Shown here in pieces: positions 1,635 to 58,882 of a stretch of 64,000 nucleotides of DNA (position 1 is its first letter; every line of letters starts with the position of its first letter). Below the pieces are notes generated by a model, which saw nothing but the letters and a program-made list of their open reading frames with translations, made no database searches and had not been told where the DNA came from. Origin of the DNA: Thalia democratica (Eukaryota); NCBI GenBank assembly GCA_965202585.1, contig OZ241826.1, forward strand, positions 27,962,001 to 28,026,000. Reading direction: 5' to 3'. The position numbers and the translations under genes were made by a program.

Positions 1635-1666
1635 CATTTTATTACAGATTATATATAAAATACATC
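1635..1666 (+). promoter_or_regulatory. Conserved 3' splice acceptor 19 nt upstream of the PARP ATG
   Basis: ttt(a/t)ttacAG|att...ATG with exactly 19 nt between AG and ATG in all five copies (AG at 1646-47, 10571-72, 21657-58, 37591-92, 57147-48). Confidence 0.6.
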
Positions 1667-3400
1667 ATGTACTCAAACGAAGAATATTTAGATCAGACAA
1701 TCACACAGTTTTCCGGTCCTAAGAACTACTTGCGCCGCCTGTGCGAAGAAGAAAAGCAAAAGACGAAAACTAAAATAGAAAACATGATCGAACAATTTGA
1801 TGCGAGAAAAGAAAAATTGGTGAAACACGCCGTAAATTTGTTTGAGTGCGACACTTCGACATCTAAAAAATCTTTTTTAAAAGGTTTCAATCATGAGCTT
1901 CAGTTGTTGGAAAGCGACGATCCGGATTACGATCTGTTGAAAGGATCGCTCGGTTTGAGCACTGAACTAAACCAATTAAAAAAGTACTCGAACAAAAACG
2001 TCGCTCTCAAGATTTACAGGGTCAAATCAAAAGTGGAACGTTGCAGATGTCCGAGCTTGCTGCTTCTGCACGGCACCAAAGAAAGTAACGTCGAGGGAAT
2101 TTTGAAAGAAGGACTGAGGCCTTCGTCGTCCGGCAAACATGGTCCCGGTATTTATTTGACGAACAGCTTTGAAATTGCTCACCGATACGGAGGTTGCTAC
2201 GCGATAGACGATGGGAACCTTAAAGACTTGACGTACTTGTTTGTTAGCAAAGTAAAAAAGACGCTGGCAAGTTCAAGTTGTCTTTGTGGAGACTGTAAAG
2301 ATGACCGCTCTGTTAAAAATCGCAAACCGTTATTCGGTAAGAAGACAACTTCTACTGTGTTTGTAAAGTCGTCGTTACAATGTCTCGACTCCAGTTTTAG
2401 TTACGAGCCCGTTTTAAAGGTTTTTGATGGAAACTCCTATTCCTACAAACAAGTTGAATTCGAAGATTCTTCAGCCCGCAAGTTTGATAGCAACGAAAAC
2501 AAAATTCTTTCGGGCACGTTTCAAGTGGACAATGACGAAAAAAGAATAGCTGTTGCTCACCATGACCTAGTAACTCTAGCGTACCTGGTAAGAATCGAAA
2601 TAAAACAAAGCGCACGCGTGCTTTCAAAACACATTTTGTACGATAAACTCTACCAAAGGAAGTTTTTAAAAGAGCTGCCTGTTTCAGGTTCGCAAAAAGC
2701 CGTGTTGATCGAAAATAGTCCTGCCACTTTCGAAGACTGCTCCATGAACACTTTTGTTGCCGAGCTTGAAAAAGAAATAAGCGCCAATCAACAGGCAGAA
2801 GTTGAACATGCGAAGCATCAGTTTGAACGCAAAGTTAAATCTTTCATGCGGCAACTGTTGTTCGATACGAGCAGCATATCGGAAATCAAATGTTGCGCCA
2901 TGTACAAAGCGGAGCTGCTGCATGCTTCAGATCCAGATCATCAGTTTGTGCTCAAGTCGATGAACAAAATGAGCCCGAACGCGGCAATTCAGAAAATTTT
3001 CAGGATAAACCCCTTAGACGGATTCGAGGTTGAAAAGATACGCGGAAGCTTTCTTTACCTGCGAGGAGTCAAGTCAAACGAGCTGCCAAAAGTTCTGGCG
3101 AGAGGCTACCCGGCGAGCCAAGAGGATTGGTTGGAGCAGTGCGAATGTAGAGCTGGTCGCTGCTTATGCTACGCGTCCACCAGTTTGAACAGGGAACTTT
3201 TGAGAGGAACAAGCCTCTGCGTCACGAACGGACAAGTCGGAAAGCTTTCGTTTGTCTTCGTGTCAAGCGACGGAAAAGACGCGGAAAATGAAGCTTTTCC
3301 CAACTCCGACACCAGAAGATGCTGTTTTAAAAGCAACGGAGTAGAAACCATGCTGATCGGTATGATTCCGGCTTATTTAATTGTTTTTAGCGTTCAATAG
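1667..3400 (+). CDS. PARP-like ADP-ribosyltransferase, 577 aa, copy 1 (intact): N-terminal helical segment, ART domain, coiled linker, degenerate second ART domain
   Basis: Uninterrupted 577-aa ORF. PARP signature LLLHGTKESNVEGILKEGLRPSSSGKHGPGIYLTNSFEIAHRYG (HGT His, GIY Tyr, downstream Tyr), preceded by KIYRV and followed by a terminal strand VTLAYLV. Markedly GC-richer than the flanks. AATAAA 7 nt after the stop. Confidence 0.88.
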   Translation: MYSNEEYLDQTITQFSGPKNYLRRLCEEEKQKTKTKIENMIEQFDARKEKLVKHAVNLFECDTSTSKKSFLKGFNHELQLLESDDPDYDLLKGSLGLSTELNQLKKYSNKNVALKIYRVKSKVERCRCPSLLLLHGTKESNVEGILKEGLRPSSSGKHGPGIYLTNSFEIAHRYGGCYAIDDGNLKDLTYLFVSKVKKTLASSSCLCGDCKDDRSVKNRKPLFGKKTTSTVFVKSSLQCLDSSFSYEPVLKVFDGNSYSYKQVEFEDSSARKFDSNENKILSGTFQVDNDEKRIAVAHHDLVTLAYLVRIEIKQSARVLSKHILYDKLYQRKFLKELPVSGSQKAVLIENSPATFEDCSMNTFVAELEKEISANQQAEVEHAKHQFERKVKSFMRQLLFDTSSISEIKCCAMYKAELLHASDPDHQFVLKSMNKMSPNAAIQKIFRINPLDGFEVEKIRGSFLYLRGVKSNELPKVLARGYPASQEDWLEQCECRAGRCLCYASTSLNRELLRGTSLCVTNGQVGKLSFVFVSSDGKDAENEAFPNSDTRRCCFKSNGVETMLIGMIPAYLIVFSVQ

Positions 3401-6400
3401 ACTTTGAATAAACTATCTTTTTGTAATTAAAACAATAGCAATTTGTTTTTAAGCATACACAAGCTACTATTGTTTTAATTTTTCGGAAAGTCCTTTAAAC
3501 TTTTTTCTACAGTTTTATTTTAACAAATATTTATTCATAATAGTAACTAACATCTACTTTTCTTAAAGTTACAAATTTGTTTGAAAAAGATAAAAAGTTA
3601 TCTTACTCCTCAACAAACAAGTTTTCGATACTTTTTACAGATATATCATTACATCAACCGGCTTACTTGACAGATTTTAGCTCTTAGTAGATTTAAGCAA
3701 AAAAAAATCACTGCTGTCTTTTTATAGTTGAGTCGATCAACTAAAAAACATCAGCGAAAATCTACAGAGTCTACGCCTCTGATTAAATAACACCCGTGAT
3801 GAGCTTTAACATTTCTTGGGGGTTGTATTTGTATCAAAATACTTAAATCTTTTAATTTAACTTTGTTAGTATAAGTTCGTATGTGTATGCGTTGTCTTGA
3901 AAGTGTTAATTTGTTTACGATTAGTCTCATACAAAATTAATTCAGCTTAAAAATAGATCAGACTAATTTTTTATTAAAATTTGTAATTTTTTTTTACAAT
4001 ATTATAAGTTTTGTAATACCATAAAAAAGTAATAGTTAACAAATTAAAACTCTCCAATTTAATCAATAAACGTTTTCAGAGTCGATTTAAGCAAAATTTT
4101 AATTAAAAAAATTTGTTAGCTTTTAATATATAATTATCTTTTATGTCATATATCAAAACTTTTAGGTTGACATTACCACGACGCAGGCTCATTCAAAATC
4201 ATTACAAAGGAACTGTGATTTAAATTATGTTTTTGCCAGATTACGTTATTTTGAGTTTTCTATTCTTTTTTGGTTGAAAACCTTTTTAAAGGTATTTATG
4301 TAATTCAGCATCTACGTCACGTCACTGAAGATTAAACTCATGTAACATTATTATTATGCTTACACGTGATACTTAAACAAGGCAAAAACTTAAACAAAAA
4401 CAATTATACAAATTTTCTTTCGTCAACGGTCATAGTTTTTCTTAACATTACTGTACAAAAAAGGCTAATATTTTTTTTTTGGGACTAGATTAAATACAAA
4501 TTCGTTTCATTTAACTATGTATATTCATTAGTCGAAAATTCTTTACAGAGAGAAACATAATTTATTCCCTCTTTTTAAAATCAAAATATTTTGAAAAAAT
4601 TTTTCCATACATTAACTCCTTAATTAGTGCAATAAGTTAAGGACATTAGGAGCTCAGAGTGGTTACTGCTCCTTTGTAGTAAAACTATTATAGTTGTGTT
4701 TTATATATGTAAATTATAATAATCTTTTGTAAACCATCAAGAATTTTTTTCTTTTGAAAATGGAAAATAAATAAAAGGTTTCTAAAAAACGTTATAGTAA
4801 AGATGATATAGTGCACAATGTATACTGCTAATATAGTGTTTACCTCATTATACAAAAAGACTAAGTTAAAATTAAGTAAACTTATAAAATGTAATTAATT
4901 AGTTATTTACGTGAAAAGTGAACAAATCAAAGTTTGTAGTTGTACAGTAGCAGTAGAGTTAGAAAATTAACCACTTTTAAAAGCAAATTAGTTCGTTAAA
5001 CATTTTTTTTAATTAAGATTTTTCTCTAAGAATTTTATTTTATAACATTTATCTTAATATATGTAAAAAAAAAACTTAAAGATTAAAATTTAATTCGTTG
5101 CTAAGAACAAAAATTTTAGATTTTATAGCTTTTCTACTAAATAAATAAAGAATTATACAACCGCACAAATAAATTTAATAAACTTAATTTGACTGCTAGT
5201 ATCTGCAGATGCATTCTTTATATAAGTAACAATGTTTTACACCAGTTAAATTTAATAAGCCGTAAAATTTTGCAGGCATAAAAAAGTTTAAAACTTTACA
5301 AATTTTCTGCACTTTTTACTATGTATTGAAACAAATTATTTTAACTGATAAGAAATATAAAATAACTAAATAATGACAACAAGAAGTAATTTTATAGGAT
5401 TTAATTCTATTATTGATCTAATGTTATTTTAAAGAAGCATAATAAAAGTAGATATTAGATTAAATTTAAAAATTTTGCTAAGTAAAGTTTGTTTTCTGTC
5501 ACTGTTTAAATGAGATAACAAACTGTTTTAAATATTCTACAGGTTGGGAAATTTAGCTGATACTAATTATGAAATAGTTTGTTGCAATTTTAGAAAATAT
5601 TCAGTGAACAGATTTAGTGACACTGTTGGATAATATGACAACCATATATTGATCTAAAAGTATTAGAACAATTATAAAGTTTGTTAAACTAAAAAAGTCA
5701 ATAAACAGTTTAAACAGATTATAATAACAGCTATTAGTAACTTATAACATTTTAACTAGTTTTTGAATTGTTTATTTATTTTACATATTAAACAAAACTA
5801 TTATTTTTAATAGCTTCTAATAAGTTTGCGACGGTGATGTAATGTATATATAAGGGGTTTAACAGAATCAAATTTACTAAATAATATTTTTTTACCGCTG
5901 AAAGGCGCTACTAGTTGCTTTATATAACCACAAACCATAATTAAAACTAGTTTGTTGGTTTTTAAACTTAACAAAAAACTTTTTAGATCATTACTTAGTA
6001 AAACAAATCTTTATCATTTAGTTACAGTTATACTCTGTTTAGCAATTTTAGTATATGTTTAGTCATGATACTGGGTAAGCAAATTAAAAAAAAAATATTA
6101 TGTAAACTTGTACTTTCGCAGAAGTTCATAGTTATATATAAAACTTAATTTAAACTTAAGGTAAGAAGTAATCTAATATTAAATTTTAGATAAATAGTAG
6201 TTTAACACAAGTAAAATAAAACTGAACACTGAATAACTTCTAGATACATAAAAGTAATCTACAATCCTTTAAAAGTTAGTTAATCAATAACTTCTAGGTG
6301 TTGACTTAAAACTAAGTAAGCAACTCAATATTGTTTAGTTAAATACTATAAAGTTAATTACTAAAATTTTAAACATAAACTAGAATTAAGTTAACTTGCT

Positions 6401-8824
6401 TAAATTGTACTTAGATCAGCACAAATCAAGTTTCTTGTTTAAACGTTTGTTTTAATTTAATGAAAAAGTCTTCAGAAAAGTTCAAACAATCAACACTAAG
6501 TAAATAATAAAAATAAATAAATAAATTTAAAACATTTTAGTTGAATAGAATTTATTTACTTTCAAGTTAACTCTAACCAGCTACATAAATTTTAACAGCA
6601 TGTTCAATAAAAAGTAAAATAGGATCAGAACTTCTAATTTTTTTATACTTTTTAGTTTCTTAAAATATTAAAACTTCGTAATTTTATAAATAACGCGATC
6701 GTCTAATTATTACTCTAAAACTGGTTCCGGTTAAAATTGATTGGGACTAGGTTTTGGTGCATTCTTCTCAATCTCTGTAAAGTATAGTTTTATCAGTTAC
6801 TAGTTCATGAGCAAATAAAAAAATGTTTTTAAACGTTTTTTTAATGGTTAGTAAAAATTAAACAAACCTTCCTAGAATGTCGGTTTATGAATGTTTTCGT
6901 CAGCAGGTATGGGACAAAAATTTTCGTACTAAGTTAAAACAAAATTAAAGTTTTACTTTGATAACCACAGTAGGAACTTTAAATAATTTAGTTGGGTGTT
7001 ATTTTAATATTAATATATTGCTGGTCTAGAACATTTTCACACTAAGTAGACTTATTTAGTTTTTTAGATTACTAAAAAACGTTTATTGATTTATAAAATA
7101 AGTTTTTCAAATCATATTAATTGTTTTCACTATTTTGGTTTCTAAATCAATTTTTTTGTTCAAAATAAGCGTAAAGTTAAATACAATTTTATTTTTTTGT
7201 AGTGTTTTTTGATACGAGTTAAAAAATTTTTTTGATAATTTGTATTTATTACACTAGTTTTTGGTCTTTCAGCCCTGTTTTGTTTTTTAATTAGCATTAA
7301 TAAATAAAAACAAAAAAAAAATTGTATGTATAAAATTTAACACAATACATTGAGTATGAAACAAAACAATCTTTAAAAATAGTACGTTTTTAAACTCAAA
7401 AATAGCAACTTTTTGTGTTTTTGCTATTTTATGATGAGATTACGATTCGGCAGTCTTTTTATAAGTGAAGGGCCAATATTTTCTCAGACAAGTTTGCGTG
7501 GGCTGCAATGCGTAGAAAAACTTCGGCGGGGTGCAGTGAGTTCATACAATTGTAGTAATTATTCTACTATAATAGTGGACAAAAAATGCGACCATAATTA
7601 ATAATTATTAAGTTAAGAGCTTATTTATAAAATTTTACTACATACAGAATTAATTACTTTATAAAAGTATGTTTATTGTTGGTAAGCACTTAGATGGTTT
7701 TGAAAGTTTATTCTTTTGAATATATATATTGATAAGCGAGTTTTTATCTTAAAATTTCATTTGTTTCCGATCGTCTATTGATTATTGTTTTAACTTTTAA
7801 AGTATGAAAATTTTACTAAATTTAAAAAAATAGTCTAAAACTTATTAAGCCCTGATGTACAACGTAACAAACAGAATCAATCACCAAAAACTTAACTTTG
7901 CAAAATCAGAGTGTTGAATAATGAAAAGTTAGTTAGAAGGGACGTTAAAAACAACGTATAAAGTTTAATTATTTGTCAACATTTGATTAACATTTGGGAT
8001 TGTCTTGATAACTCCTACGAGAATAGCTTTAAAGTTATATCAAAATGACGCAATAGTTTCAATAAAAAGTTTTTATGAAAAAAATCTAGTTTATGATTCA
8101 AATCTAAACTTTATAGGCAAAATAAGTACATACTTATATATACAGTCATAAAAAACACAATAGTTATAGTTCGAAGTAACATGACATAAATGCTGAATGA
8201 AATAGGTATCTTTCAATAACTAGATCTTTTCAAGTTTCAACCAAAATTAGAATAACATACTCTAATAACATTTATATACTTTTTACATTAATCAATATTA
8301 TATTCTAAAGGTAAAAACCATCATAACCTAAAAAACAGTAAAAATTAGACTTTGTTTTACTATTGTTTATAAAATTGACCCTGTGTAGTAATTTTGTCTC
8401 ACTAGAAGTTTTAAAATACAAATAATTGAGCTTGCCTCACGGCATACGAAAGTCAAGGCATAGGCTGTGTAGACTTTTGCCGATGTTTTTGTTGATTAGT
8501 TCAACTATAGTAACACAACAGTAAAATTATTTTTAATAAAAATCTGCTTAGCGCTAAAATCAGTCAAGTAAGCAGGTTGGTGTAATGATAAACCTATAAA
8601 AACTATAAGAATTTGTTTATTGGGTAGTAAAATAAATTTTACATCTTTTTCAAACGAACCTGTGATTTTAAGAAAATATAATATTAGCAACTATTCTAAA
8701 TAAATGTTTCTTAAAAAAACAGTATAAAAAATTATATAGAAATTTGAAACAAATTAGAACAATTGTACATTTGAGTGTTTAAAAAACTATTGTTTCAACT
8801 GTAAAGAGATAATTTATTCTAAGT

Positions 8825-10551
8825 CTATTGAACGCTTAAAACAACTAAATAAGCCGGAATCAGGCCGATTAAATGATGCATGAAACTTTCTCTGGTTTTA
8901 AAACAGCATCCTCTGGTGTCGGAGTTGGGAAAAGTTTCCTCATCCGCGCTTTTGCAATCGCACGCCACGAAGACAAACGACAGCTTTTCGACTTGTCCGT
9001 TCGAGACGCAGTGGCTTAACCCAAGTCCAAGTTCAAAGTCCCAGCTGGTGGACGTGTAGCAGGAACAGCCGTCGACTTCACACTCGCACTGTTTCAATAA
9101 ATCCTCGAGACTTGCCAGGTAGCCTCTCACCAGAACGTTTGGCACTTGGTAGGACTTGGCTCCTTGCAGGTAGAGCACGCCTCCGTGTATCGTTTTGTCT
9201 TCGTCAACTGGGTTGATCCTGAAAATTTGCAGGACTGCCGCGTTAGGAATCATTCCGGTCATCGACCCGACCACAAACTGACGATCTGGATCTGAAGCTT
9301 GCAGCAGCTCCGCTTTGTAGTTGGCACAGTTGTCGGCTTCTAATATGCTGCTCGTGTCAAACAACAGTTGCCTCATGAAAGAGTTCACTTTGCGTTCAAA
9401 CTGATGCTTCGCATGTTCAACTTCTGCCTGCTAATTGGCGCTTATCTCTTTTTCAAGCTCGGCAACAAAAGTGATCATAGAGCAGTCTTCGGAACTGGCA
9501 TGACTGTTTTCGATCAACGTGTCTTTTGGCAGATCCGAAATTGGCAGGTTTTTTGAAAAGTTAGTTTTGCAGAGTTCGCAGTACAAAATGTGTTTCGCAA
9601 GCTCGCGTGCGCTTTGTTTTGTTTCGATTTCTATAAGGTATTCGAGAGTTACTAGATCATGGTGAGCTACAATTATTCTTTTTACGTCATCACTCGATTG
9701 AAACGTGCCCGAAAGAATTTTGTTTCCTTCGCTGTCGAACTTGCAAGCTGAAGAATCTTCGAATTCAACTTGTTTGTTGGAATATGTTCCATGTAAACTT
9801 TTAAAACGGGGTCGTAACTAAAACTGGAGTCATGAATTGGATACGACGACTTTACAAACACAGTCGAAGTTGTCTTCTTACCGAATAAGTGTTCGCAAGT
9901 TTTAACAGACCGGTCATCTTTACACTCTCCACAAAGACAACCTGAACTTTCCGGCGTCTTTTTCACTTTGCTAACAAAAAAGAACGTGAAGTCTTTGGCT
10001 TTCCCATCGTCATCCACGTAGTTTTGACCGTAACGTTGAGCAATTTCAAAGCTGTTCGTCAAATAAATGCCGGGGCCCAGTCTGCCTGAAGATGAAGGCC
10101 TCAGTCCTTCTTTCAAGATTCCCTCGACGTTGCTCCCTTTGGTGCCGTGCAGAAGCAGCAAGCTCGGACATCTGCAGCGTTCCACATTCGATTTGACCCT
10201 GTAAATCCTGAGAGCGACGTTATTGTCCGAGTACTTTTTTAATTCGTTCGTTTCACCGCTCAAATCGAGCGATTCTCTCAACAGACTGTAATCCGGATCG
10301 TCGCTTTCCAACAACTGAAGCTCGTACTTGGAAACCTTGGAAAGAGATTTTTTTCAAACTGTACTTCTGCATTCAAACATCTTAACAGCTTCTTCCACAA
10401 ATTCTTCTTTTTCTGCATCGCATTCTTCGACCATTTCTTTGATTTCAGCTTTCGTCTTTTGCTTTTCTTCTTCGCAAAGACTGCGCAAATAATTTTGAGG
10501 ACCAGGAAACTGAGAGATTATCTGATCTAAATATTCTTCGTTTAAGTACAT
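8825..10551 (-). pseudogene. PARP-like copy 2, disrupted
   Basis: Colinear with copy 1 from MYLNEEYLDQ to IPAYLVVLSVQ. In-frame TGA at 10354-10356, a ~4-nt deletion near 9790 (VLKVYMEHIP instead of VLKVFDGNSY), and an in-frame TAG at 9431-9433 where other copies have Q/K. Confidence 0.9.
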
Positions 10552-11937
10552 AATGTATTCACTATAAAATCTGTAAAAAAGGTCTAAATTTAAAAAAGCA
10601 TATGTATCTATACACCGGTATGTCTATATATGTTTTTCATTGTTATAAGTAATTAAAGAACAAGTTATTGTAACAAAATACAATGACATTTCTACTGTCT
10701 TTGAAAAAATGATCAAAATGCACGCATGTTACTAAAAGTTATGTCTTTACAGGTTCAACAAAGAGGTAAGCTTTGTGTTGGGCACTGCAGATTAAAAAAC
10801 AAATTAAAATTTTTAGATAAAATTAATAAGAAATGTTCAAATAAAATTATTTCAAAAAAAAAATAATCAAAAACATTATTAATATTAAACAAACAATATA
10901 AATATAAATATCATTGTGAGAATTTGACATTTGAATGTATATTTTTTTTTAACTCACGAGAATATTTAATTTTTCCAAACCAAGTAAAAAGTTAATAAAT
11001 ATTAATGTAATAATAGACAATGCTTGAAAATCTTATTACTTGTATTCTTATATATATATATTGTTTATTTAAAGATTTAAAAAACGCTCAAAATTTAGGT
11101 CTAAGGAGTTGGTGTACGAAAATACATATCGGTTATTGACCACATGATTTAACAATTTCTTAAGAGTAAATAAAAACTATATTTTTTAAGTCTTACTTTT
11201 AAATCTTAAGAAATAAAGCATTCAAAAAAAGTAATGAAAAGAGGAAAAAAAGAAAGTCTACTTAGTTAAGCGTTTACTTTAAAAAATTTTAGTCATAATA
11301 AACTTAAAAACTTTACTAACAGAATAAAATAAGAAAATACAGTCTAAACATAAACTATAGGGAATATAAATATCTTTAGATTAAAAAATAACTCGATTGG
11401 AATAACGATATAAACAAAACTAATAGCGAACAAAAAAATAAATTATAGATAGGTCACAGCTTCTATAAAAAAGTTAAAGTGAAGTGAGCTGAAAGATTTG
11501 TTCGTTGAGTATTATTAGTATTTTATGGTAAGTATTTAGTTTTTAATTTGTTATATAGCTGTTCGATAGAATAACTAAAAAAGTTTATATAAAAACATAT
11601 AGTTTGTATAACTTTTTAAAGAAGTGAATTAAGCCATAAAACCAACTTAACATTTAAATATTTTGCGTTTAAAAAAAAAGTATATTTTAAATTTATACTA
11701 CATTTCTTTTGAATACATTTCTAAGGCTGAAAATGTAACTTTAAAGTAACGAACAGTATTTGAAGACATAATAAAGAAATTTCAAGGTTTCCTCAGAAAA
11801 ATAATTTAATTTATTATAAGTTTTATTGAACAGAAATACCAGCTCATCGTTTATTAATATAATTAACTCGATGTTAGGAAGTACATCTGTAACCGACAAT
11901 ATTGTGTGGGTTACTAAAGACAGTTGAATGGTTATAG

Positions 11938-15881: not shown

Positions 15882-16176
15882 ATACGAACAGTTCAGACGA
15901 TTGTAAAATAATTTATAAATTAGTTACGACTATAAGAAAGAAATGCATATTAGACTATAATTTAAACAACAGGTGTGAAAATTATTTTTTCTAAAATATA
16001 TTTTAAGTAATATGAGTAATGGCATGTACTTGAAAAAAGCAAAATTAGATGTTTTTTAAGGAACAATTCAGATTGTTTTAATATTTTCGATACATTAGTT
16101 ACAGAAAGAGTAGTATTAAACTGTTCATATTATAACAGATCTGCAAAATTTTAAAATTTTTAAAAACGCTAAAACA

Positions 16177-16404
16177 CATTTTCAGTTTGATTTCTCAGAC
16201 ATTTAACCACAAATCCAGAATTTTTCTTTGCAATGTATCCACCTATTAATTCAAGTTACCCAAAATTATACAAAATCCAGTGAATAATAAGACAATGTGG
16301 TTTTATTTGATTTTGTATAATTCAAGGTAACATAAATTAGTTATTGTATGCAGTGCAAGAAACATTTCTTGATTTGTGGTTGTCTGAGCATCAAACTAAA
16401 AATG
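16177..16404. repeat. Foldback/MITE-like imperfect palindrome (~230 bp)
   Basis: cattttcagtttgatttctcagacatttaaccacaaatc pairs with gatttgtggttgtctgagcatcaaactaaaaatg. Inner arms aattatacaaaatc / gattttgtataatt also pair. Confidence 0.7.
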
Positions 16405-19210: not shown

Positions 19211-20160
19211 CTGGGTTGCCATTTTGCCTGTAAAACTGGTAAAACCCGGAATTTTACAATTTAGGCAAAAAAAAATCTGGAATTTGAGAAATTTTGAAAA
19301 ATCCTTGAATTTTAACAATAATTACTGTAAAAGCCTTGAATTTTAACAATTTTGATGTTACTAAGTAGTAAATTTCGATTTGTCTCTGAAAATATAACAA
19401 ATAGATAAAAAGGTTTTGTCATCCTCAAGATTTTTTAAATATATTAAATGTAGCTTTAAAGTTTATTTTCAATGTATTTTTTTTATTTAACACAGTTTCT
19501 TACCTTAAACTTAACTTTTAAAAAAAAAACCCAAAATGTGTACTTTTAGAGTCTTCGAAAAGTTTGGAAAACCTGGAAAAATTGCGACAGGGTTGCTACA
19601 ACGTCAGGAAATAAAGGAAAGTCAGGGAAAAATAGGGGGTTTTGAAGAAAATTCTGGAAAAGTCCGGAGTATTGAAAAAAAATTTTAAAAGTCTGATTTT
19701 GTCAGTTTAAATTTACAAAATTCCAAATTTTTTAAAGCCTTCAAGTGGTAATAAAATAGTTAAAAATCCTTTAAAGTAAGATTTAAGTTTCAAATTTTTC
19801 CTAGAAATTGACAAATTTTTTTAGTTCTCATTACACTCATTAGGTATAAATTAATAAAATATCCTTTATTTAATTATCATTATATTATAATTAATATTGT
19901 TATTAAATATCCTAAAATTGTTATTTTTACCTGTATTAAAAAAACATTAAAAGCTTCATATTATTTCAAGTGTTAGATTATGTATTTTAGAATAAGTTTG
20001 AATTAAGAGTATCATTTAGAAAAGTCATGAAATGTCAGGAAGAAATGGAGGTTTTGAAAAAAAGTCAAGAAATGTCAAAAAAATTGACAAAAATAAAAGA
20101 AAGTCAGAATTTATTATTATAAATTTACAAAATTCTTTACTTTACAAATCCTTCAAATAG
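19211..20160 (+). mobile_element. Internally deleted copy of the CAGGGTTGCCA composite (also at 54702-55650)
   Basis: ctgggttgccattttgcctg at 19211, cagggttgctacaacgtcagg at ~19589, and repeated aaagtcagg motifs. Confidence 0.6.
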
Positions 20161-21677
20161 TAATACAACAATAAATAGTAATAGTGAATTAACTATACAA
20201 ATAAACTGTGAGCTGAGATTACTGTTTAAGTAAACTTATAATAAAAAATATATTTTTAAAGTAAACATAAAAGTATGTACTTTTTTTACATAACTTCAAA
20301 TGTTTTCTGCTTCTTTTAAATAATTTTTTAGGCTTAAATGTAATTTTAAGCTAAGGATTTTTTTACTCGATAAATGCGTAGTGTCTAGTGTTACATTATG
20401 TTATTTTTGTTTTATAACTTACAACAAATAAATTAAGTTTACTGAACAAATAATTTTTTGTGCATCATATCTTTGAACCAAACATTTTGAGCGTTTTTAT
20501 TTGTATTTCAAAAAATTTTGTATGATTGTATTAACTTTTTTAAATTTTTTTATGTTATATAATACTATATAAATTTTTTTTTTATGTTATTTAAAAATAT
20601 ATAATAGTTAAATATAAACTTGACTAAGTATTTCAATCAAAATATTATGTGAAAAATTAAAATTAAAAAATTTAACACTATATACTAATAATACTTAAAA
20701 TCCTTCAGCTCACAACAATTTTACTTTTAACTCATTAAAAAACATTGTGAGCTGTTTTCCTAATGTTTTCATGTTTGCTACAAATATTGTTTTTCTCGTT
20801 TTATGAATTAAATCTAACTTGCATTTTAAATTGTAATTTTCAAATATTTTCCACTGAATTTTTTTTAAGTTATAGGATTAAACTGTATTTTAATTTTTAT
20901 GTTGTTAGAAAAGGTTTTCGGAACATCGTGAATAATATTTTTAAAGTAAACAGAAAACTATACTAACTTTCTTTTCATTCATTTTATTAGTTGTTTTATT
21001 TTTTTGATTTCAAAGTTCTAGTTTATACAATAATAGGTTTTATTTACTCGTAAGAAATTTTAAAAGCATGTGGTCGGATAACAAAATTTACAAGTTTTTT
21101 TAGTTTTATTATCACTCTTACTACTAACCCTTACCCTTGATTGGTAACGTTGTTTTTTTTATAAACAAATAATAATTATTTTTTTAATTAGTTTCATTTC
21201 TACTTCCGTGCAAAAATTACTTTTCGTACAGAAGTGTCTTAGTGCAAAATTGTCCCATCGTGCATATTTGACCCGTTTCCCCTTAGATCAAACACTTAAT
21301 GTAATTTTTTATCATTTTAAAAACATTATATAAATATAAAAGCAATAAGTAAGTTTAGTATTAAAAGCATTGTCTGTACATTAACTAATTACTTGGTTAG
21401 AAAAAATGAACTATTTACATGAGTTAGATAGATTTACATTTAAGTGTAAAAAGCAGTCAAAAAATATTTATACACAGTTCTTCTAGAATCCAAACTATTT
21501 ATAGTGGTTTTAGAAGTTTAAAATTATTTTATACCTATCTGAGATAAGTATTTATATATATATTAATTTTTGTTATTACTGTGTATTCGTTTATATAACA
21601 TTACTTACATATAACAAGAAAAAATTAGAAAGTTTTTTAAAACTAGAATTTATTACAGATTATTTAGTAAAAACATC

Positions 21678-23392
21678 ATGTACTCAAACGAAGAATGTTT
21701 AGATAAGACAATCTCGCAGTTTCCTGGTCCTCAGAACTATTTGCGCCATCTGTGCGAAAAAGAAAAGCAAATGACAAGTTTTAAAATCGAAGAAATGGTT
21801 AAATATTTTGAAACGGAAAAAGAAGAATTGGTGGAAGCAGCTGTCGATTTGTTTGAATGCGGATCTTCGGCTTTAAAAAAAGCTCTTTCAAAGGATTCCA
21901 AGCACGAGCTTCAACTGTTAGAAAGCGACGATCCGGATTACGATCTGTTGAAAGCATCTCTCGGTTTGAGTCAATTGAAAAAGTACTCAAATGAAAACGT
22001 CGCTCTTAGGATTTACAGGGTCAAATCAAATGTTGAACGTTGCGGATGTCCGAGCTTGCTGCTTCTGCATGGCACCAAAGGGAACAACGTCGAGGGAATC
22101 TTGAGAGAAGGACTGAGGCCTTCGTCGTCCGGCAAACATGGCCCCGGCATTTATTTGACAAACAGCTTTAAAATTGCTCACAATTACGGTCAAAACTACG
22201 TGGAAGATGATGGGATCGTAAAAGATTTGACGTACTTGTTTGTTAGCAAAGTGAAAGAGACGCTTGAAAGTTCAAGTTGTCTTTGTGGAGAGTGTAAAGA
22301 AGATCAGTATATTACTCACAAATCGTTATTCGGTAAGAAGACAACTTCAACTAAGTTTATAAACTCGTCGTTTCTCAATCTTGACTCCAGTTTGAGTTAC
22401 GAGCCCGTTTTAAAAGTTTTTGATGGAAATTTGCATTCCAACAAACAAGTTCAATTGGAAGACTTTCAAGCCCGAGAGTTTGACAACGACGGAAGCAGAA
22501 TTCTTTCGGGCACTTTTCAAGTAAGTGAAGTCGATAAAAAAATATTTGTGGCTCACCACGATCTAGTAACTCTCGAATACTTTATAGAAATCGAAGTAAA
22601 ACAAAGTGCACGCAAGCTTGCGAAACATATTTTGTACGACGAACTCTGCCAGTTTAAGTTTTCAATAGACCCGCAAATTTCAGATCTGCCAAAAGACACG
22701 TTGATCGAAAACAGTCATGTCAGTTCTGAAGACTGCTCCATGAACGCTTTTGTTGCTGAGCTCAAAAAAGAAATAAGCGCCAATAAGCAGGCAGAAGTTG
22801 AATATGCAAAGCATCAGTTTGAACGCAAAGTGAACTCATTCATGCAGCAACTGTTGTTTAAAACGAGCAGCATATCGGAAACCAATAGTTGCCTTAAGTA
22901 CAAAGCGGAGCTGCTGCAAGCTTCAGATCCAGATCACCAGTTTGTGCTCGGGTCGATTACCGGAATGAGCCCGAACGCGGCAATCCAGAAAATTTTCAGG
23001 ATCAACCCAGTCGACGAAAGCAAAAAGATGCACGGAGGCTTGCTCTACCTACGGTTTTCAAATCCCACGACGTGCCAAAAGTTCTGGCAAGAGGCTACCA
23101 GGCAAGCGACGAGGATGTGTTCGAACAATGCGAATGTGGACCCAGCTGCTATTCTAGCTACGCATCCGACGTCTTGAAATGTGAACTTTTACTTGGGTTA
23201 AGCCACTGCGTCACGAACGGACAGGTCGAAAAGCTGTCGTTTGTCTTAGTGGTTAGGGATGGAAAACGCGCAGACAATGTAGCTTTTCTCAACTCTGACA
23301 CTAGAGGGTGCTGTTTTAAAACCGGGTTGCAAATAATACATCAGCCGATTGGCCTTATTCCGGCTTATTTAGTTGTTTTTAGCGTTCAATAG
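21678..23392 (+). pseudogene. PARP-like copy 3: 499-aa ORF (21678-23177) with intact first ART domain; 1-nt deletion truncates the second domain
   Basis: ORF 21678-23177 matches copy 1 up to GGLLYLR. At ~23055 cggttttcaaatcc lacks one base relative to cggggagtcaagtcc of copy 4. The homologous C-terminus continues in the 23072-23392 frame. Could still be an expressed truncated gene. Confidence 0.85.
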
Positions 23393-24169
23393 ACTTTTTA
23401 TAAATTATCTTAACACAATTAAAACGACAGCAATTTTCGGTTAAACATTTAAAAGTAACTGTTGTTTTAAGTATTTAGAAAGTTCTATACGTTATTTTTA
23501 TACAGTTTTTTTTTTAATAAACAGTAATTTAAAATAATAACTAACATGATATTTTCTTAAATTCTCAGGTTTGTTTGAAAAAGATGAAAGTACATTTACT
23601 TCCTAACTAACAAATTTTCGATAGGTTTTACAGGTTTATCATTTAACCAATCAGCTAACTTGATTGATTATAGCTATGGTAGATTTGTAACAAAAAACTT
23701 TACTGTTGTCTTTCTATTGTAGACACGATTAACTAAAACATTGGCTAAAGTCTTGAGAGCCTAAGCCTGGACTTTTTTATGCCGTAAGTTGCTAAAGTTT
23801 TTCAATAAGGAAATTATAACTGACAAGTTGGCCATGTCTCATAATTTTTATTAAATAACACCCGTGATAAGTTTTAACATTGCTGTGAGGTTGTATTACT
23901 ATCGAAATAGTAAAACACTTCTTTTAGTTTAACTTTGTTAGTAAATGTTTGTACATATATGAGTTGTGTTAAAACTGTTAATTATATAAAATTTTGTAAT
24001 ATTGTTTAACAGTTAAAAACCAATAATCTCAAATTCCTCCCTTTTCAACAATATTATTGCTTATTGAACGACAAAAAACGCTCAAAAAGTATGGTCCGAT
24101 GATCTGATGCATAAAAATCCTTTCAATTATCGAGTTATACACGAAAAATTCATGTCCAGGACAGATTAT

Positions 24170-29091: not shown

Positions 29092-29330
29092 CTAATAGTG
29101 TTTGGAATCTATACTTTCTGCATAGTTGTAAAATAATTTTTTGGTATTTGATTCATATCCAGATTCACTGTTTTCAGAAGGTTCGTAGCAGCCGGAGTTT
29201 TGTTCGTACATTTCATAATAATTATTTGGATTATGCTCGTATGTGTATTTTCTTCTGTAGTTGCTTGGTCTCCTCCTATACTGATGATGGTTTCTTAGTG
29301 TACAATAACCATTAATTTTATTGAAGCTAA
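29092..29330 (-). other. Out-of-frame continuation resembling a Y-box protein C-terminal tail
   Basis: An overlapping frame reads RNHHQYRRRPSNYRRKY...SENSESGYES right after the CSD ORF stop. An imperfect 18-nt tandem repeat sits at the frame junction. Confidence 0.45.
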
Positions 29331-30652: not shown

Positions 30653-30679
30653 ACTCGTATTATACAGAGGGTCTACATT

Positions 30680-33800: not shown

Positions 33801-35842
33801 GATAATAACAGAGATAATAAATCTAAAATTTTCGTTCTTTAGCAACCAACAAAATTTTAATGTTTAAGTTTATTTTTTAACATATATTAAGATAACTATT
33901 ATAAAATAAAAGTCTTAGAGAAAATCTTAATGAAATAAAATGTATATTTAATTGACTAATTTGCTTTTAGAAGTAGTTAATTTTTTAACTCCATTGCTAC
34001 TGTACAATTACAAACTTTGATTTGTTCACTTTTCATGTAAATAGTAAATTTCTTACACTTTTTAAGTTTACTTAAGTTTTAGTTAGTCTTTTTTTATAAT
34101 GAGGTAAACACTATATTAACAGTATACATTGTGCACTATATCATAGTTAATATAACGTTTTTCCAAAAACTTTTTGTTTCTTTTCAATTTTCAAAAATAA
34201 AAATCTGATGGTTTGCTAAAAAGTTATTATATTTTACTTATAAAAAACAAAAGTATAAAAGTTTAATACCAAGAGCAGTAACCTCTGCGAGTTCCTATTG
34301 TTCTTAATTCTTACGGAATTAATGCATGGAAAATGTTTCCACATTGATTTAGAAATGTTTTAATTTAAAAAGAGAGAATAATTTATGTGTCCCTCGGTAA
34401 AGAACTTTTTGACTTATAAATATACGTAGTTAAAAGAAACAACTATAGCAGGGAAATTAATAGCTTAAAAAATAAAACTGATACATTTGCTACTGTTTTT
34501 ATTTTCACTTTAGGAGGAACTACCGCTCAAATGTTCTCCCCCACCACTCGTTCCTGGTTGTGATAGTATTTTACTATTCAACCTTGATAAAAAAAAGTGT
34601 TTTATAGTTTTTGTCACTTTCTGCATAACTTAAGTCTCTAGCTGGAATTTTTAAACAAAAGCGTTGTAACTTGATATAACATTAAAAAACACATCATAAG
34701 GTTTATTATTTATTTTTAAGTTTTTTAGTTATGTATAAACTAGAACTAAATAGGAGCTGTAATCGGAATAAATGTACGAATTAAACATTTTCGTAGCACA
34801 AGGCTTTCTAGTAAGTCAGTTGCATCTAAAAGAGTTAAGTGTAACAGCTAAGAAACTTGTAAAAATATTATAAAAACCTAGTGCAGTTTTAAGGTGAGTT
34901 GGTATAAGTGTTGCGGTGAATTAAATACAAAATATAAGAGTGTGTAATAATGTTAAGCTTGGTTTAGTGACCATCACTACTATTTTAAGTAGTTTCACAT
35001 TTCCTTAGCAAAATGCACTTTCAAATATTAACAGAAAAAACTCGTAAAATTGTATTCATTAATATATTAAAGTTAAAAAAAAATCAGTTTTAAATTCTTT
35101 ATCAATTTTGAACAGTAATTATTAACACTTTTACAAAGCAATTAACTCTTTATTGTACGTATGCAAACATCATTGTGACGTAGTTTTGGTTGAAGTTTTA
35201 AATGTTTACTACCAACTCGTTGTACTGCAAAACTTTTGCAATAAGCTGGTCATTCATCTTTGGAATTTTACCATCTTAAAAGACAACGCATATATGTACA
35301 AAAATTTCTAACAAAGTTAAACTAAAAGAGGTGTTCATTATTTTGATAGAAATACGACCTTCAAGCAATAATAAAACTTATCACAAGTGTTTTTTAATAA
35401 ATCTAATGAGACTTGGTAAACTTGTTAGATACAAACTTTCTATTGAAAAACTTGAGCTTGTCTTAGGGCATACGAAAGTCAAGGCTTAGACTTTGAAGAC
35501 TTTCACTAATGTCTTTTTTGATAATGATAACTAAAGAAAGACAACAGTAAACTTTTGGTTTAAAATATATCATAGCCATAATCAGTAAAGTAAGCCGGAT
35601 GGTGTAATAATAAACCTGTAAAAACTTTGAAATTTTGTAAAAACAAAAATTTGTTTGTTTGGAAGTAATTAAACTTTTCATCTTTTTCAAACAAACCTGA
35701 GATTTAAAAAAATATCATGTTAGTTAACATTCTAAATAACTATTTAAAAAATAATGTGTAAAGATTATGTATAAAAATGTTTATAAAACTTGAAATAGAA
35801 AGTGCTATTTTTTCAACTGTAAAAAGATAATTTATTCAAGGT

Positions 35843-37571
35843 CTATTGAACGCTAAAAACAATAAAATAAGCCGGAGTAAGGCCGATCGGCTGATGCATG
35901 AAATCCGTTCCGGTATTAAAACAGCACCCTCTAGTGTCGGAGTTGAGAAAAGTTACATTGTCCGCGCTTTTGCCATCCCTTACCACGAAGACAAACGACT
36001 GCTTTTCTACTTGTCTGTTTGTGACGCAGTGGCTCATTCCTTTTGAAAGTTCCCTGCTCAAGCTGGTGGACGCGTTGCAGTAACAAATGTGTCTGCACTC
36101 GCACTGCTCCAATAAATCCTCGTAGCTCGCAGGGTAGCCTCTCGCCAGAACCTTCGGCACCTCGTAGGACTTGACTCCCCGCAGGCAGAGCAAGCCTCCG
36201 CGCATCTTTTTGCTTTCGTCAACGGGGTTGATCCTAAAAATATTCAGGATTGTCGGGTGGCCGTTCGGGTTCATTCCAGTCATCGAACCGAGCACAAACT
36301 GATAATCTGGATCTGAAGTTTGCAGCAGCTTCGCTTTGTAGTTGGAACAGTTGTTGGTTTCCGATATGCTGCTCGTATTAAACAACAGTTGCCGCATGAA
36401 AGAGTTCACTTTGCGTTCAAAGTCAAGCTTCGCATGTTCAACTTCTGCCTGCTGATTGGCACTTATTTCTTTTTCGAGCTCAGTAACAAAAGTGTTCATA
36501 GAGCAGTCTTCGGAACTGACATGACTGTTTTCGATCAACGTGTCTTTTGGAGGATCTGAAATTTGCGGGTCGATTGTAAAATTGGTCTGATTGAGTTCGC
36601 CGTACAAAATAAGTTTCGCAAGCTCACGTGCGTTTTGTTTTACTTCGATTTCTATCAAGTATTCGAGAGTTACTAGATCGTGGTGAGCTACAATTATTCT
36701 TTCTTCGTCATCACCTACTTGAAACGTGCCCGAAAGAATTTTGTTTCCGTCGCTATCGAACTTGCAGGCTGAAGAGTTTTCGAGTTTAACTTGTTTGTTG
36801 GAATATGAGTTTCCATCGAAAACCTTTAAAACGGGCTCGTAACCAAAACTGGAGTCAAGACACGGGTATAAAGATTTTATAAACGAAGTTGAAGTTGTAT
36901 TCTTATCAAATAATAGTTCACAAGTTTTAACAGACTGACCATCTTTACACTCTCCACAAAGACAACCTGAACCTACTAGTGTCTCTTTCACTTTGCTTAC
37001 AAACAAGTACGTCAAGTCTTTGGCGTTCCCATGGTCTTTCGCGTAGTTTTGACCGTAACGATGAGCAATTTCAAAGCTATTCGTCAAATAAATGCCAGGG
37101 CCGAGTCTGCCGGAAGACGAAGGCCTTAGTCCTTCTTTTAAGATTCCCTCGACGTTCTTTCCTTTGGTGCCGTGCAGAAGCAGCAAGCTCGGACATCTGC
37201 AACATTCCACTTTTGACTTGACTCTGTAAATCCTGAGAGCGACGTTATTGTTCGAGTACTTTTTCATTTGGTTCGTTTCAGCGCTCAAACCGAGCGATCC
37301 TTTCAACAGATCGTAATCCGGATCGTCGCTTTCCAATAGTTGAAGCTCGTGCTTGGAATCCTTTGAAAGTGATTTTTTAAAAGCCGAAGTGTTGCATTTA
37401 AACAACTTTATAGCACCTTTCACCAATTGTTCTTTTATCCATTCAAAATTTTTAACCTTGTTTTCAATTTTAGTTTTAGTGTTTTGCTTTTCTTCATCGC
37501 ACAGGCGGATAGATCTGAGGACCAGGAAACTGCGTGATTGTTTGATCTAAATACTTTTCGTTTGAGTACAT
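35843..37571 (-). pseudogene. PARP-like copy 4: 5-nt deletion near codon 20, remainder open (527 aa)
   Basis: ATG at 37571 (MYSNEKYLDQ...). At ~37510 cag atc tat c cgc ctg lacks 5 nt relative to aac tat ttg cgc cgc ctg. The downstream frame 35843-37426 is open with both domains. The ORF-track start is a non-ATG codon. Confidence 0.85.
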
Positions 37572-39106
37572 GATGTATTTACTGTATAATCTGTAAAAAA
37601 GTCTAAATTTAAAAAAACAACTTTTTTTTTTTAAATTGATAATTAAAATTATTTAAATGTAGTCAAAGTAATTAAAATTAAAGTATGATTGTTTCTCAGA
37701 TTTCTTAACCAAGTAAGTAGTTAATGTTCAGACAATGCTATTCATGCATATCTGATTTCTCTATATTTTTTTATTGAAGAATAAAAAAAGGCTCAAAAGG
37801 TTTGATCTAATGAGTTAATGTGATAAAAAGCCTTTGGGTTATTGAGTCGCACACCATATGTTTTACAAGTTTTTCTGAGCAATAAATGTTAATGTTTTTT
37901 AACTTAAATATTTAAACCTTGATAAATAAAACAATAAATATAATAAATAATAAAATGAAAGGAAATTTAAGTAAGTAATACTTTTACTTAAAATATTTTT
38001 ACTTACTATGTACTCAAAAACATATCTAGCAACATAAAACTTAAATACAGTTTAAGTTTAAGCCTAAAAAAAATTCGTAGAAAATCTTTATAACATTACT
38101 ATTTAAATATTAACCTAAAATAGATGATAAAACGAATTAAACTATATTTATAGCAACCATGGAAATAATTAGAAGAGTGCTCACAACTTCTTTATAAAAG
38201 TAAAATCGTAATAAACTTAAAGTTTTTAGGTTAAGTATTATTAGTACTTTTTGCTAGAAATTACCTTTTTTTTTGATTTGACAATTAGATTAAAACCCTT
38301 AAAATAGTTACTATTTGTTTCGACATGGACAAGACGTTAAAAGGTATCCGTGGAGTGCGATTCGTTTTATTTGTTGTTTAACAAACAATATATATTTGAA
38401 TAAAAAAAATATTATATAATTTTTCAAAGAAGTTAATTCCACTATATATATAAAATTTAGTGTACGACAAATAAAAGCGCTCAAAATTTTTGGTCCTAAG
38501 ACCTGGTGCACAAAATAATTACTTGGTTTATAAACTCAACTTAACTTTTGTAGATTAAAAAATAAAAATAAATACTGTAGCATCAGACACTATGAATTTA
38601 AGGAGAAAATAAAAATCATCCGGTTAAAAATTCTTTTTAATTCAAAAATGAATTTGAAAGAAGTAGAAAATATTTAAAGACATATAAGGAAAATGTATAA
38701 ACTTTTATGTTACCTAAGAATAAAGATTAACTTATTATAAGTTTACTTTAACAGTAGTCTCAGATCACAATTTATCTGTTTAATTAACTCACTGTTAGAA
38801 GGTACATCTATAATTTAGTAACCTCTATCACAAAGTTTTTTCATGGATAGACTGGAAAAATAAAAAAATATAAGTTTATTAATATTCTGAAGTTATTTCA
38901 AAGTAGTATTTCTAAATAATTATGTAAAAAAACCCAAATAGAAAATGCTGCAACTAAGACTTAACTACTGTTATTTTAACATAATAAATCAAATTTTAAA
39001 TGACAAATACTAACAACTCCTTAAACAAAAGTAATTAGACGATGAGCAATGATCAGTTATGACCCAGTAGCCTACAAGGAGTTTTATGTATGGTTATAGT
39101 GTGTTA

Positions 39107-55650: not shown

Positions 55651-57167
55651 AGTAATACAACAATAAAAAGTAATAGTGAATTAACTATACAAATAAACTG
55701 TGAGCTGAGATTACTGTTTAAGTAAACTTATAATAAATAATATAGTTTTAAAGTAAACATAAAAGTATGTACTTTTTTTACATAACTTCAAATATTTTCT
55801 GCTTCTTTTAGATAATTTTTTAGGCTTAAATGTAATTTTAAGCTAAGGATTTTTTTACTCGATAAATGCGTAGTGTCTAGTGTTACATTATGTTATTTTT
55901 GTTTTATAACTTACAACAAATAAATTAAGTTTACTGAACAAATAATTTTTTGTGCATCATATCTTTGAACCAAACATTTTGAGCGTTTTTATTTGTATTT
56001 CAAAAAATTTTGTATGATTGTATTAACTTTTTTAAACTTTTTTATGTTATATAATACTATATAAATTTTTTTTATGTTATTTAAAAATATTTAATAGTTA
56101 AATATAAACTTGACTAAGTATTTCAATCAAAATATTATGTGAAAAATAAAAATTAAAAAATTTAACACTATATACTAATATCACTTAAAATCCTTCAGCT
56201 CACAACAATTTTACTTTTAACTCATTAAAAAACATTGTGAGCTGTTTTCCTAATGTTTTCATGTTTGCTACAAATATTGTTTTTCTCGTTTTATGAATTA
56301 AATCTAACTTGCATTTTAAATTGTAATTTTCAAATATTTTCCACTGAATTTTTTTTAAGTTATAGGATTAAACTGTATTTTAATTTTTATGTTGTTAGAA
56401 AAGGTTTTCGGAACATCGTGAATAATATTTTTAAAGTAAACAGAAAACTATGCTAATTTTCTTTTCATTCATTTTATTAGTTGTTTTATTTTTTTGATTT
56501 CAAAGTTCTAGTTTATACAATAATAGGTTTTATTTACTCGTAAGAAATTTTAAAAGCATGTTGTCGGATAACAAAATTTACAAGTTTTTTTAGTTTTATT
56601 ATCACTCTTACTACTAACCCTTACCCTTGATTGGTAACGTTGTTTTTTTTATAAACAAATAATTATTATTTTTTTAATTAGTTTCATTTCTACTTCCGTG
56701 CAAAAATTACTTTTCGTACAGAAGTGTCTTAGTGCAAAATTGTACCATCGTGCATATTTGACCCGTTTCCCCTTAGATCAAACACTTAATGTAATTTTTT
56801 ATCATTTTAAAAACATTATATAAATATAAAAGCAATAAGTAAGTTTAGTATTAAAAGCATTGTCTGTACATTAACTAATTACTTGGTTAGAAAAAATGAA
56901 CTATTTACATGAGTTAGATAGATTTACATTTAAGTGTAAAAAGCAGTCAAAGAATATTTATACACAGTTCTTCTAGAACCCAAACTATTTATAGTGGTTT
57001 TAAAAGTTTAAAATTATTTTATACCTATCTGAGATAAGTATTTATATATATATTTATTTTTGTTATTACTGTGTATTCGTTTATATAACATTACTTACAT
57101 ATAACAAGAAAAAATTAGAAAGTTTTTTAAAATTAGAATTTATTACAGATTATTTAGTAAAAACATC

Positions 57168-58882
57168 ATGTACTCAAACGAAGAATGTTTAGATAAGACA
57201 ATCTCGCAGTTTCCTGGTCCTCAGAACTATTTGCGCCGTCTGTGCGAAAAAGAAAAGCAAATGACAAATTTTAAAATCGAAGAAATGGTTAAATATTTTG
57301 AAACGGAAAAAGAAGAATTGGTGGAAGCAGCTGTCGATTTGTTTGAATGCGGATCTTGGGCTTTAAAAAAAGCTCTTTCAAAGGATTCCAAGCACGAGCT
57401 TCAACTGTTAGAAAGCGACGATCCGGATTACGATCTGTTGAAAGCATCTCTCGGTTTGAGTCAATTGAAAAAGTACTCAAATGAAAACGTCGCTCTTAGG
57501 ATTTACAGGGTCAAATCAAATGTTGAACGTTGCGGATGTCCGAGCTTGCTGCTTCTGCATGGCACCAAAGGGAACAACGTCGAGGGAATCTTGAGAGAAG
57601 GACTGAGGCCTTCGTCGTCCGGCAAACATGGCCCCGGCATTTATTTGACAAACAGCTTTAAAATTGCTCACAATTACGGTCAAAACTACGTGGAAGACGA
57701 TGGGATCGTAAAAGATTTGACGTACTTGTTTGTTAGCAAAGTGAAAGAGACGCTTGAAAGTTCAAGTTGTCTTTGTGGAGAGTGTAAAGAAGATCAGTAT
57801 ATTACTCACAAATCGTTATTCGGTAAGAAGACAACTTCAACTAAGTTTATAAACTCGTCGTTTCTCAATCTTGACTCCAGTTTGAGTTACGAGCCCGTTT
57901 TAAAAGTTTTTGATGGAAATTTGCATTCCAACAAACAAGTTCAATTGGAAGACTTTCAAGCCCGAGAGTTTGACAACGACGGAAGCAGAATTCTTTCGGG
58001 CACTTTTCAAGTAAGTGAAGTCGATAAAAAAATATTTGTGGCTCACCACGATCTAGTAACTCTCGAATACTTTATAGAAATCGAAGTAAAACAAAGTGCA
58101 CGCAAGCTTGCGAAACATATTTTGTACGACGAACTCTGCCAGTTCAAGTTTTCAATAGACCCGCAAATTTCAGATCTGCCAAAAGACACGTTGATCGAAA
58201 ACAGTCATGTCAGTTCCGAAGACTGCTCTATAAACACTTTTGTTGCTGAGCTCGAAAAAGAAATAAGCGCCAATAAGCAGGCAGAAGTTGAATATGCAAA
58301 GCATCAGTTTGAACGCAAAGTGAACTCATTCATGCAGCAACTGTTGTTTGAAACGAGCAGCATACTGGAAACCAATAGTTGCCTTAAGTACAAAGCGGAG
58401 CTGCTGCAAGCTTCAGATCCAGATCACCAGTTTGTGCTCGGGTCGATTACCGGAATGAGCCCGAACGCGGCAATCCAGAAAATTTTCAGGATCAACCCAG
58501 TCGACGAAAGCAAAAAGATGCACGGAGGCTTGCTCTACCTACGGTTTTCAAATCCCACGACGTGCCAAAAGTTCTGGCAAGAGGCTACCAGGCAAGCGAC
58601 GAGGATGTGTTCGAACAATGCGAATGTGGACCCAGCTGCTATTCTAGCTACGCATCCGACGTCTTGAAATGTGAACTTTTACTTGGGTTAAGCCACTGCG
58701 TCACGAACGGACAGGTCGAAAAGCTGTCGTTTGTCTTAGTGGTTAGGGATGGAAAACGCGCAGACAATGTAGCTTTTCTCAACTCTGACACTAGAGGGTG
58801 CTGTTTTAAAACCGGGTTGCAAATAATACATCAGCCGATTGGCCTTATTCCGGCTTATTTAGTTGTTTTTAGCGTTCAATAG
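57168..58882 (+). pseudogene. PARP-like copy 5: near-identical to copy 3, same frameshift
   Basis: 499-aa ORF 57168-58667 plus 58562-58882 frame. Same 1-nt deletion at ~58545. Only a few amino-acid differences from copy 3 (e.g. GSW vs GSS, RRL vs RHL). Confidence 0.85.

Follow-up and report, generated by a model that had tools for sequence, protein, structure and literature searches.

The window analysed here is a 64,000-nt stretch of the Thalia democratica genome (assembly GCA_965202585.1, contig OZ241826.1, positions 27,962,001 to 28,026,000), and coordinates below refer to it unless a contig is named. It is AT-rich, with a GC content of approximately 24% between genes versus approximately 38% in coding blocks, and it holds five copies of one gene. 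The sole fully open copy, copy A, is an intact, intron-free gene on the plus strand at 1667..3400, a single uninterrupted reading frame of 577 amino acids plus stop, found in the list of open reading frames. Its product consists of two homologous units, here termed unit 1 and unit 2. The other four copies are broken. Paralogue B (8456..10725, minus strand) is split into two ORFs, 210 and 187 aa long. Paralogue C (21610..23768, plus strand) loses its frame inside unit 2 right after LLYLR and retains an ORF of 499 aa. Paralogue D (35482..37631, minus strand) has lost its frame to a 5-nt gap close to the N-terminus, the rest (aa 24-577) being open, and paralogue E (57100..59261, plus strand) derives from a recent duplication of C, whose frame loss it shares. 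Both C and E are carried by a 10-kb direct segmental duplication, in which 16151-26106 corresponds to 51642-61570 at 95.6% identity. Retroelements sit between the family copies. One of these is an LTR retroelement at 26099-31317, with LTRs at 26099-26725 and 30674-31317 (94.4% identity), and it contains a 441-aa ORF (29327-30652, minus strand) whose final stretch is cold-shock-domain-like.

Two short elements read from the sequence flank the open frame of copy A. Upstream, a pyrimidine tract followed by AG (1635..1647, plus strand) resembles a splice acceptor, its AG at 1646-1647 lying 19 nt before the ATG; this acceptor-like TTTTTTACAG is kept in 33 paralogues. Downstream, an AATAAA starts 7 nt after the stop codon (3407..3412, plus strand) and is conserved in 35 paralogues. 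The block conserved among paralogues is approximately 2.2 kb long and spans both elements. We regard the upstream site as a candidate spliced-leader acceptor, at which transcripts of copy A might be trans-spliced.

Unit 1 opens with long helices at aa 19-57 (1721..1837, plus strand), seen in the secondary structure of the AlphaFold2 model and aligned by hhalign to the helix of unit 2. They are followed by a PARP-type ADP-ribosyltransferase (ART) domain at aa 60-314 (1844..2608, plus strand), which is identified by structural match, alignment to PDB profiles and conservation across the family. The Pfam PARP model PF00644 matches copy A at aa 130-196 only, just above its cut-off (E 1.9e-6, 28 bits versus 26.7), and is found in all 13 aligned family members, with a best E of 8.5e-12. 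A PDB profile match to PARP3 has an E of 1.2e-6. In the full-length AlphaFold2 model (pLDDT 76.6, pTM 0.68), aa 60-314 match the catalytic domains of PARP3, PARP1 and PARP2 with VIA-align Z scores of 16.0-16.5 at 15-22% identity, the highest score, 16.5, being reached with both PARP3 (3ce0) and PARP1 (7kk2). The domain contains an insert at aa 200-245 (2264..2401, plus strand) that is modelled with low confidence (pLDDT <50) and is absent from unit 2. A linker between the units, aa 315-359 (2609..2743, plus strand), is partly disordered, with pLDDT <50 at aa 335-354.

The residues that line the NAD+ site of PARPs are kept in unit 1. In the PDB profile alignment His135 (2069-2071), Tyr163 (2153-2155) and Tyr174 (2186-2188) align with the PARP His, first Tyr and second Tyr, and all three are invariant in 39 intact paralogues of the genome. 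Family-wide, counted over representatives at 50% identity, they are present in 87 of 93 (H135), 96 of 96 (Y163) and 80 of 95 (Y174). The position of the catalytic Glu is different. We placed its slot at residue 293 (2543-2545) from the ranges of the structural matches (314 corresponds to PARP1 1009 and 311 to PARP3 532) and from the equal length of the last hairpin, so the slot is a deduced position and not one taken from residue-level superposition. Copy A has Arg at this putative slot, the family mostly K (33), N (9), I (8) or R (7), and the catalytic Glu of poly-ADP-ribose-forming PARPs is not conserved there, an acidic residue occurring in only 1 of 69 members; 48 of the 69 carry an acidic residue at 290-292.

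Because no catalytic Glu is conserved, unit 1 would at best be a mono-ADP-ribosyltransferase, and its sequence is consistent with membership of the mono-ART-type subgroup of the PARP catalytic family rather than with a poly-ADP-ribose polymerase. The likeliest assignment is to the H-Y-x type, as a mono-ADP-ribosyltransferase that binds NAD+. The original prediction had described unit 1 as an active ART. Its NAD-binding residues are indeed kept, which speaks for that description, whereas the K, R, N or I at the Glu slot speaks against it, and activity itself is predicted. The absent Glu may mean that unit 1 is inactive, in which case both units would be catalytically dead and the whole protein would act as a scaffold or sensor pseudoenzyme that binds NAD+, ADP-ribose or a partner protein, as PARP13/ZAP and TASOR do. 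The lack of a conserved acidic residue at slot 293 favours this alternative, as does the presence of known pseudo-PARPs among the fold matches. However, across a family that has diverged to approximately 30% identity, unit 1 hardly varies at its H, G, Y and Y, it is the most constrained region of the protein, and human PARPs of the H-Y-I/L/Y type are active as mono-transferases despite lacking the Glu. We therefore regard a protein dead in both units as somewhat unlikely, and retain unit 1 as a putative mono-ART.

Unit 2 has the same layout, a long helix at aa 360-398 (2744..2860, plus strand; AlphaFold2 models and hhalign) followed by a degenerate ART domain at aa 399-577 (2861..3397, plus strand). 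Modelled alone, it has a pLDDT of 84.4 and a pTM of 0.78. Its Foldseek matches are the ART domains of PARP4 and PARP1 (E 1.6e-7 to 5e-6), and the 17 best chains of an exhaustive VIA-align search were all of the PARP fold, with the next scores at 5.8 or below. Z scores were 11.8 to PARP3, 11.7 to PARP1 and 11.2 to PARP10, and among pseudo-PARPs 10.2 to PARP13, 8.1 to TASOR, 8.0 to RCD1 and 6.9 to SRO1. Pfam, run on the C-terminal 232 aa alone, gave no match even at E up to 10. The ART fold that had been proposed for the C-terminal domain is thus borne out by the model of unit 2.

Within this fold, the residue set for PARP-type NAD+ binding is missing. The His slot at 466 is Arg in copy A (3062-3064) and R or Q in the copies of the window. 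Beyond the window it varies: His is present in 3 of the 39 paralogues (copies on contig C9) and in 29 of 75 family representatives (approximately 39%), followed by N (12), Q (8), Y (7) and R (4). The prediction that the His is replaced by R or Q in all copies therefore applies to the window and fails for the genome and the family, while the predicted loss of the second Tyr holds family-wide, its slot (Arg513 in copy A) being K or R almost everywhere. No family member has His and both Tyr residues in unit 2; eight have His and the first Tyr. At the slot of the nicotinamide-binding Ser there is a conserved Glu, E510. A CxC-x4-CxC motif at aa 492-501 (3140..3169, plus strand) occupies, in the hhalign register, the position of the PS..G..GPG donor loop of unit 1. 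Most of the 39 paralogues retain it, as do approximately 60% of family representatives, and its four cysteines might bind zinc. Near the C-terminus (3308..3388, plus strand), the motifs D-[ST]-R-G-C and PAYLIVF mirror FDS..GTF and AYLVRIE of unit 1. Together with G467, the Gly after the His slot, the residues S504 and E510 and the motifs D-S-R-G and PAYL form the conserved features of unit 2's own. In copy A the first of the C-terminal motifs reads DTRRCC (3308-3325), versus DTRGCC in 37 of the 39 paralogues and DTKGCC in one other; copy A is alone among the 39 in having R at the nearly invariant G551.

These residue states support the view that unit 2 is without the residues for PARP-type NAD+ binding. 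It fits the definition of a pseudo-PARP, that is, an ART fold with NAD+-site residues lost and under selection, with the failure to bind NAD+ itself predicted from sequence. Given the approximately 39% of representatives with His, unit 2 may have residual nucleotide binding. A further-reaching alternative is that unit 2 is not dead, and would either read ADP-ribose or NAD+ through a ligand pocket or form a second active site in the members with His and the first Tyr. The His counts and the eight members with both residues can be cited for it, as can the conserved G467. Against it stand the K or R at the second Tyr in nearly all members, the Cys motif in place of the GPG donor loop, the Glu at the nicotinamide-binding Ser slot, a His slot that varies freely and the blindness of the Pfam PARP model to unit 2. 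We judge such a functional unit 2 to be quite improbable, and treat it below as a pseudo-ART.

Selection was analysed in the 39 intact genome paralogues, which share 62-100% amino-acid identity. Pooled Nei-Gojobori estimates of dN/dS were 0.29 for the ART1 core, 0.46 for ART2, 0.55 for the insert of unit 1 and 0.60 for the linker, and a tree-based count gave 0.32-0.36 for ART1, 0.55 for ART2 and 0.69 for the linker, which has the highest values of all regions by either method. Taken one by one, 20% of ART2 codons show negative selection in the tree-based count. Constraint on unit 2 is weaker than on unit 1, yet unit 2 is clearly maintained by purifying selection, as expected for a working pseudoenzyme domain. 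Site-wise, 12 of 577 sites appeared positively selected at p<0.1, fewer than expected by chance, and because there is no excess of such sites, the data do not support a diversifying decoy or sensor surface.

The five copies of the window belong to a much larger family. The 802-Mb assembly contains at least 77 copies (77 scored of 1059 first-look candidates), of which 38 are full-length and without stops. Most of the scored copies lie in a 1.2-Mb array at C1:27.2-28.4 Mb, and C1, C4 and C9 carry smaller groups besides. Further afield, an exhaustive profile search returned 957 cluster representatives at E up to 1e-3 and 102 at E up to 1e-30, many of them two-unit proteins of 545-685 aa. Word-based searches with the whole protein and with each unit retrieved only unnamed ENA and JGI proteins, and a cluster look-up likewise gave no names; the ESM Atlas returned weak generic ART clusters only, all with scores <0.9, and NCBIfam no meaningful match. 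No paper on tandem PARP domains, or on an expansion of PARPs in tunicates, came up in literature searches. The family is large, without a name and probably lineage-specific. A scan of viral contigs yielded just two ORFs, both foreign to the two-unit family: an ART-PolyVal-like one from a phage, and a single-unit PARP-like one from a giant-virus MAG. The latter (contig GVMAG-S-ERX556106-33, 4347-5603) codes for 418 aa, with a Ser-rich N-terminus and, in place of the two-unit architecture, a single PARP-like domain (LLHGT..GPGIYLTNS); over 43 aa, this stretch shares 49% identity with unit 1.

An array of this kind could also be selfishly amplified or decaying DNA without a function for the organism, as approximately half of the scored copies have stops or are partial, four of the five in the window are broken and retroelements sit between copies. 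We consider this very improbable. The overall dN/dS is approximately 0.4, the 38 full-length open copies share 62-100% pairwise identity, the acceptor-like 5' site and the AATAAA are conserved, and divergent homologues from other samples retain the architecture of two units.

The relationship between the two units was assessed at the level of single sequences and of family profiles. BLASTP of aa 1-345 against aa 346-577 aligned 187 columns at 22% identity (E 2e-5) and recovered every motif pair listed in the original prediction, according to which the C-terminal third repeats the first domain element by element. A Smith-Waterman alignment of the two halves scored 79 versus 34.3 +/- 5.2 in shuffles (z 8.6), and none of 2000 shuffles scored as high. 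With profiles of unit 1 and unit 2 built from 13 family members, hhalign aligned aa 22-194 to aa 364-533 over 156 columns (probability 97.8%, E 8e-13), and a second, collinear match pairs FDS..GTF..VAHHDLVTLAYL of unit 1 with DTR..PAYL of unit 2. HMMs of the units cross-hit the opposite unit in almost every homologue of at least 500 aa (E 1e-4 to 1e-14). The self-alignment is significant by BLASTP, the shuffle test, hhalign and the HMM cross-hits alike, and the repeated unit exceeds the ART core, since in both hhalign and the AlphaFold2 models a long helix precedes the ART fold in each unit. The single-sequence identity of the halves is just 22%, and one might attribute their likeness to chance or convergence; this reading, already ruled out by the shuffle, hhalign, HMM and fold tests, has practically no probability left, given z 8.6, E 8e-13, reciprocal HMM matches throughout the family, and the same fold and element order in both halves.

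In homologues down to approximately 30% identity, the N-terminal unit scores far better with the unit 1 HMM and the C-terminal unit with the unit 2 HMM, in every member. Because every member assigns its units in this way, a single old duplication before the radiation of the family accounts for the pattern, and the comparison points to one ancient internal duplication as the origin of both units, predating the spread of the family.

Taken together, we think it highly probable that the gene encodes a two-unit PARP-type protein, in which an ART with an NAD+ site is joined to a conserved pseudo-ART from an ancient duplication, the pseudo-ART being a non-catalytic partner. Sequence, profile, fold and conservation all speak for the structural part of the original prediction, in which internal duplication gave rise to an ART followed by a degenerate pseudo-ART. 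The roles suggested there for the second domain, autoinhibitor, substrate adaptor or decoy sensor, are candidate ones. In the mechanism that we propose, the protein would be cytosolic and built of two homologous units, each a long helix and then a PARP-type ADP-ribosyltransferase fold. Unit 1, keeping the NAD+-binding His-Gly-Thr, Tyr and second Tyr, would be an NAD+-binding mono-ART. Unit 2 would be the pseudo-ART, its donor loop turned into the Cys4 motif, its second Tyr into K or R and its His variable, and would probably be packed beside unit 1 as a non-catalytic structural, regulatory or target-binding partner. We consider it probably non-catalytic because its NAD+-site residues are lost and its own motifs are under purifying selection. 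The pTM of the full-length model is a hint that the two units have a defined arrangement, in which they may be in contact.

Compared with known systems, unit 1 is closest to the ARTs of PARP1, PARP2 and PARP3 (PF00644). It has their fold (Z 16.5, 15-22% identity), its NAD+ site likewise consists of His, Gly, Tyr and Tyr, and its C-terminal AYL strand matches the KYLL strand of PARPs. Unlike PARP1, PARP2 and PARP3, however, it has no catalytic Glu and no WGR or regulatory domain set, and its chain adds a disordered insert of 46 aa, the invariant motif VAHHD and a further ART that is degenerate. Unit 2 resembles the pseudo-PARPs (PARP13/ZAP, TASOR and plant RCD1/SRO1; Z 6.9 to 10.2) in combining an ART fold with the loss of NAD+-site residues. 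Those are single pseudo-domains without an intact ART partner, whereas unit 2 follows a homologous unit that retains the residues, and carries a Cys4 insert.

Two duplicated ART-fold domains in one chain, one catalytic and one an inactive adaptor, occur in the A components of C2-like binary toxins (C2I, iota Ia, VIP2 and CDTa) (PMC6628389). By analogy, these are the nearest architectural precedent for the two-unit protein. They differ in being bacterial secreted toxins, in belonging to the R-S-E clade rather than to the H-Y clade and in the reversed order, with the adaptor first. Unit 1 lacks the motifs and fold of the R-S-E clade; it has H-Y motifs, and all of its top fold matches are PARPs. 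For unit 2, no toxin-type ART matched the fold above the level of the PARPs, exotoxin A reaching a Z of 4.3. A second comparison is offered by fish Gig2, an interferon-induced, PARP-like and lineage-expanded family with two-unit and four-unit members (PMC3617106). Its units are approximately 150-180 aa long, with an acidic motif of the LEED type and highly similar repeats, whereas the units described here are approximately 300 and 220 aa long and anciently diverged. Gig2 also has a few homologues in marine samples. No named Gig2 protein was among the matches of our homologue searches. When the copy A protein was compared by eye with the sequences printed in that paper's supplement, no Gig2-type motifs were seen in it; at this level the likeness is unconvincing, and kinship with Gig2 is a tentative idea.

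PARPs and pseudo-PARPs are each well known, but our literature searches found no description of a PARP-clade chain that joins a residue-retaining ART to an anciently duplicated pseudo-ART. Should unit 1 prove to be active and regulated by unit 2, the combination would represent a new regulatory design for ADP-ribosylation, and the family would be a candidate for lineage-specific defence in the sister group of the vertebrates. A more far-reaching idea, unlikely in our estimate, is that the proteins form a tunicate innate-immune effector class, in which a mono-ART is permanently paired in one chain with an ancient pseudo-ART that gates its active site or selects its targets, as a PARP-clade counterpart of kinase/pseudokinase pairs, the hundred-fold tandem expansion resulting from conflict with viruses or other parasites.

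Some minor observations concern transcript-level features. Downstream of the AATAAA of copy A, approximately 370 bp (3413-3778) are also conserved among paralogues and may represent an exon further downstream or a regulatory block; a second acceptor-like site, TTTTTACAG, lies within this stretch, for example at about 3631-3639. A search of the genome for what we take to be the Ciona-type spliced-leader sequence, followed by GT, gave 358 occurrences, versus 0 for the reversed control. Copies of this leader occur, for example, at C26:7129-84046 and C4:80.16-80.42 Mb, and those on C26 form a regular array with a spacing of approximately 15,085 bp.
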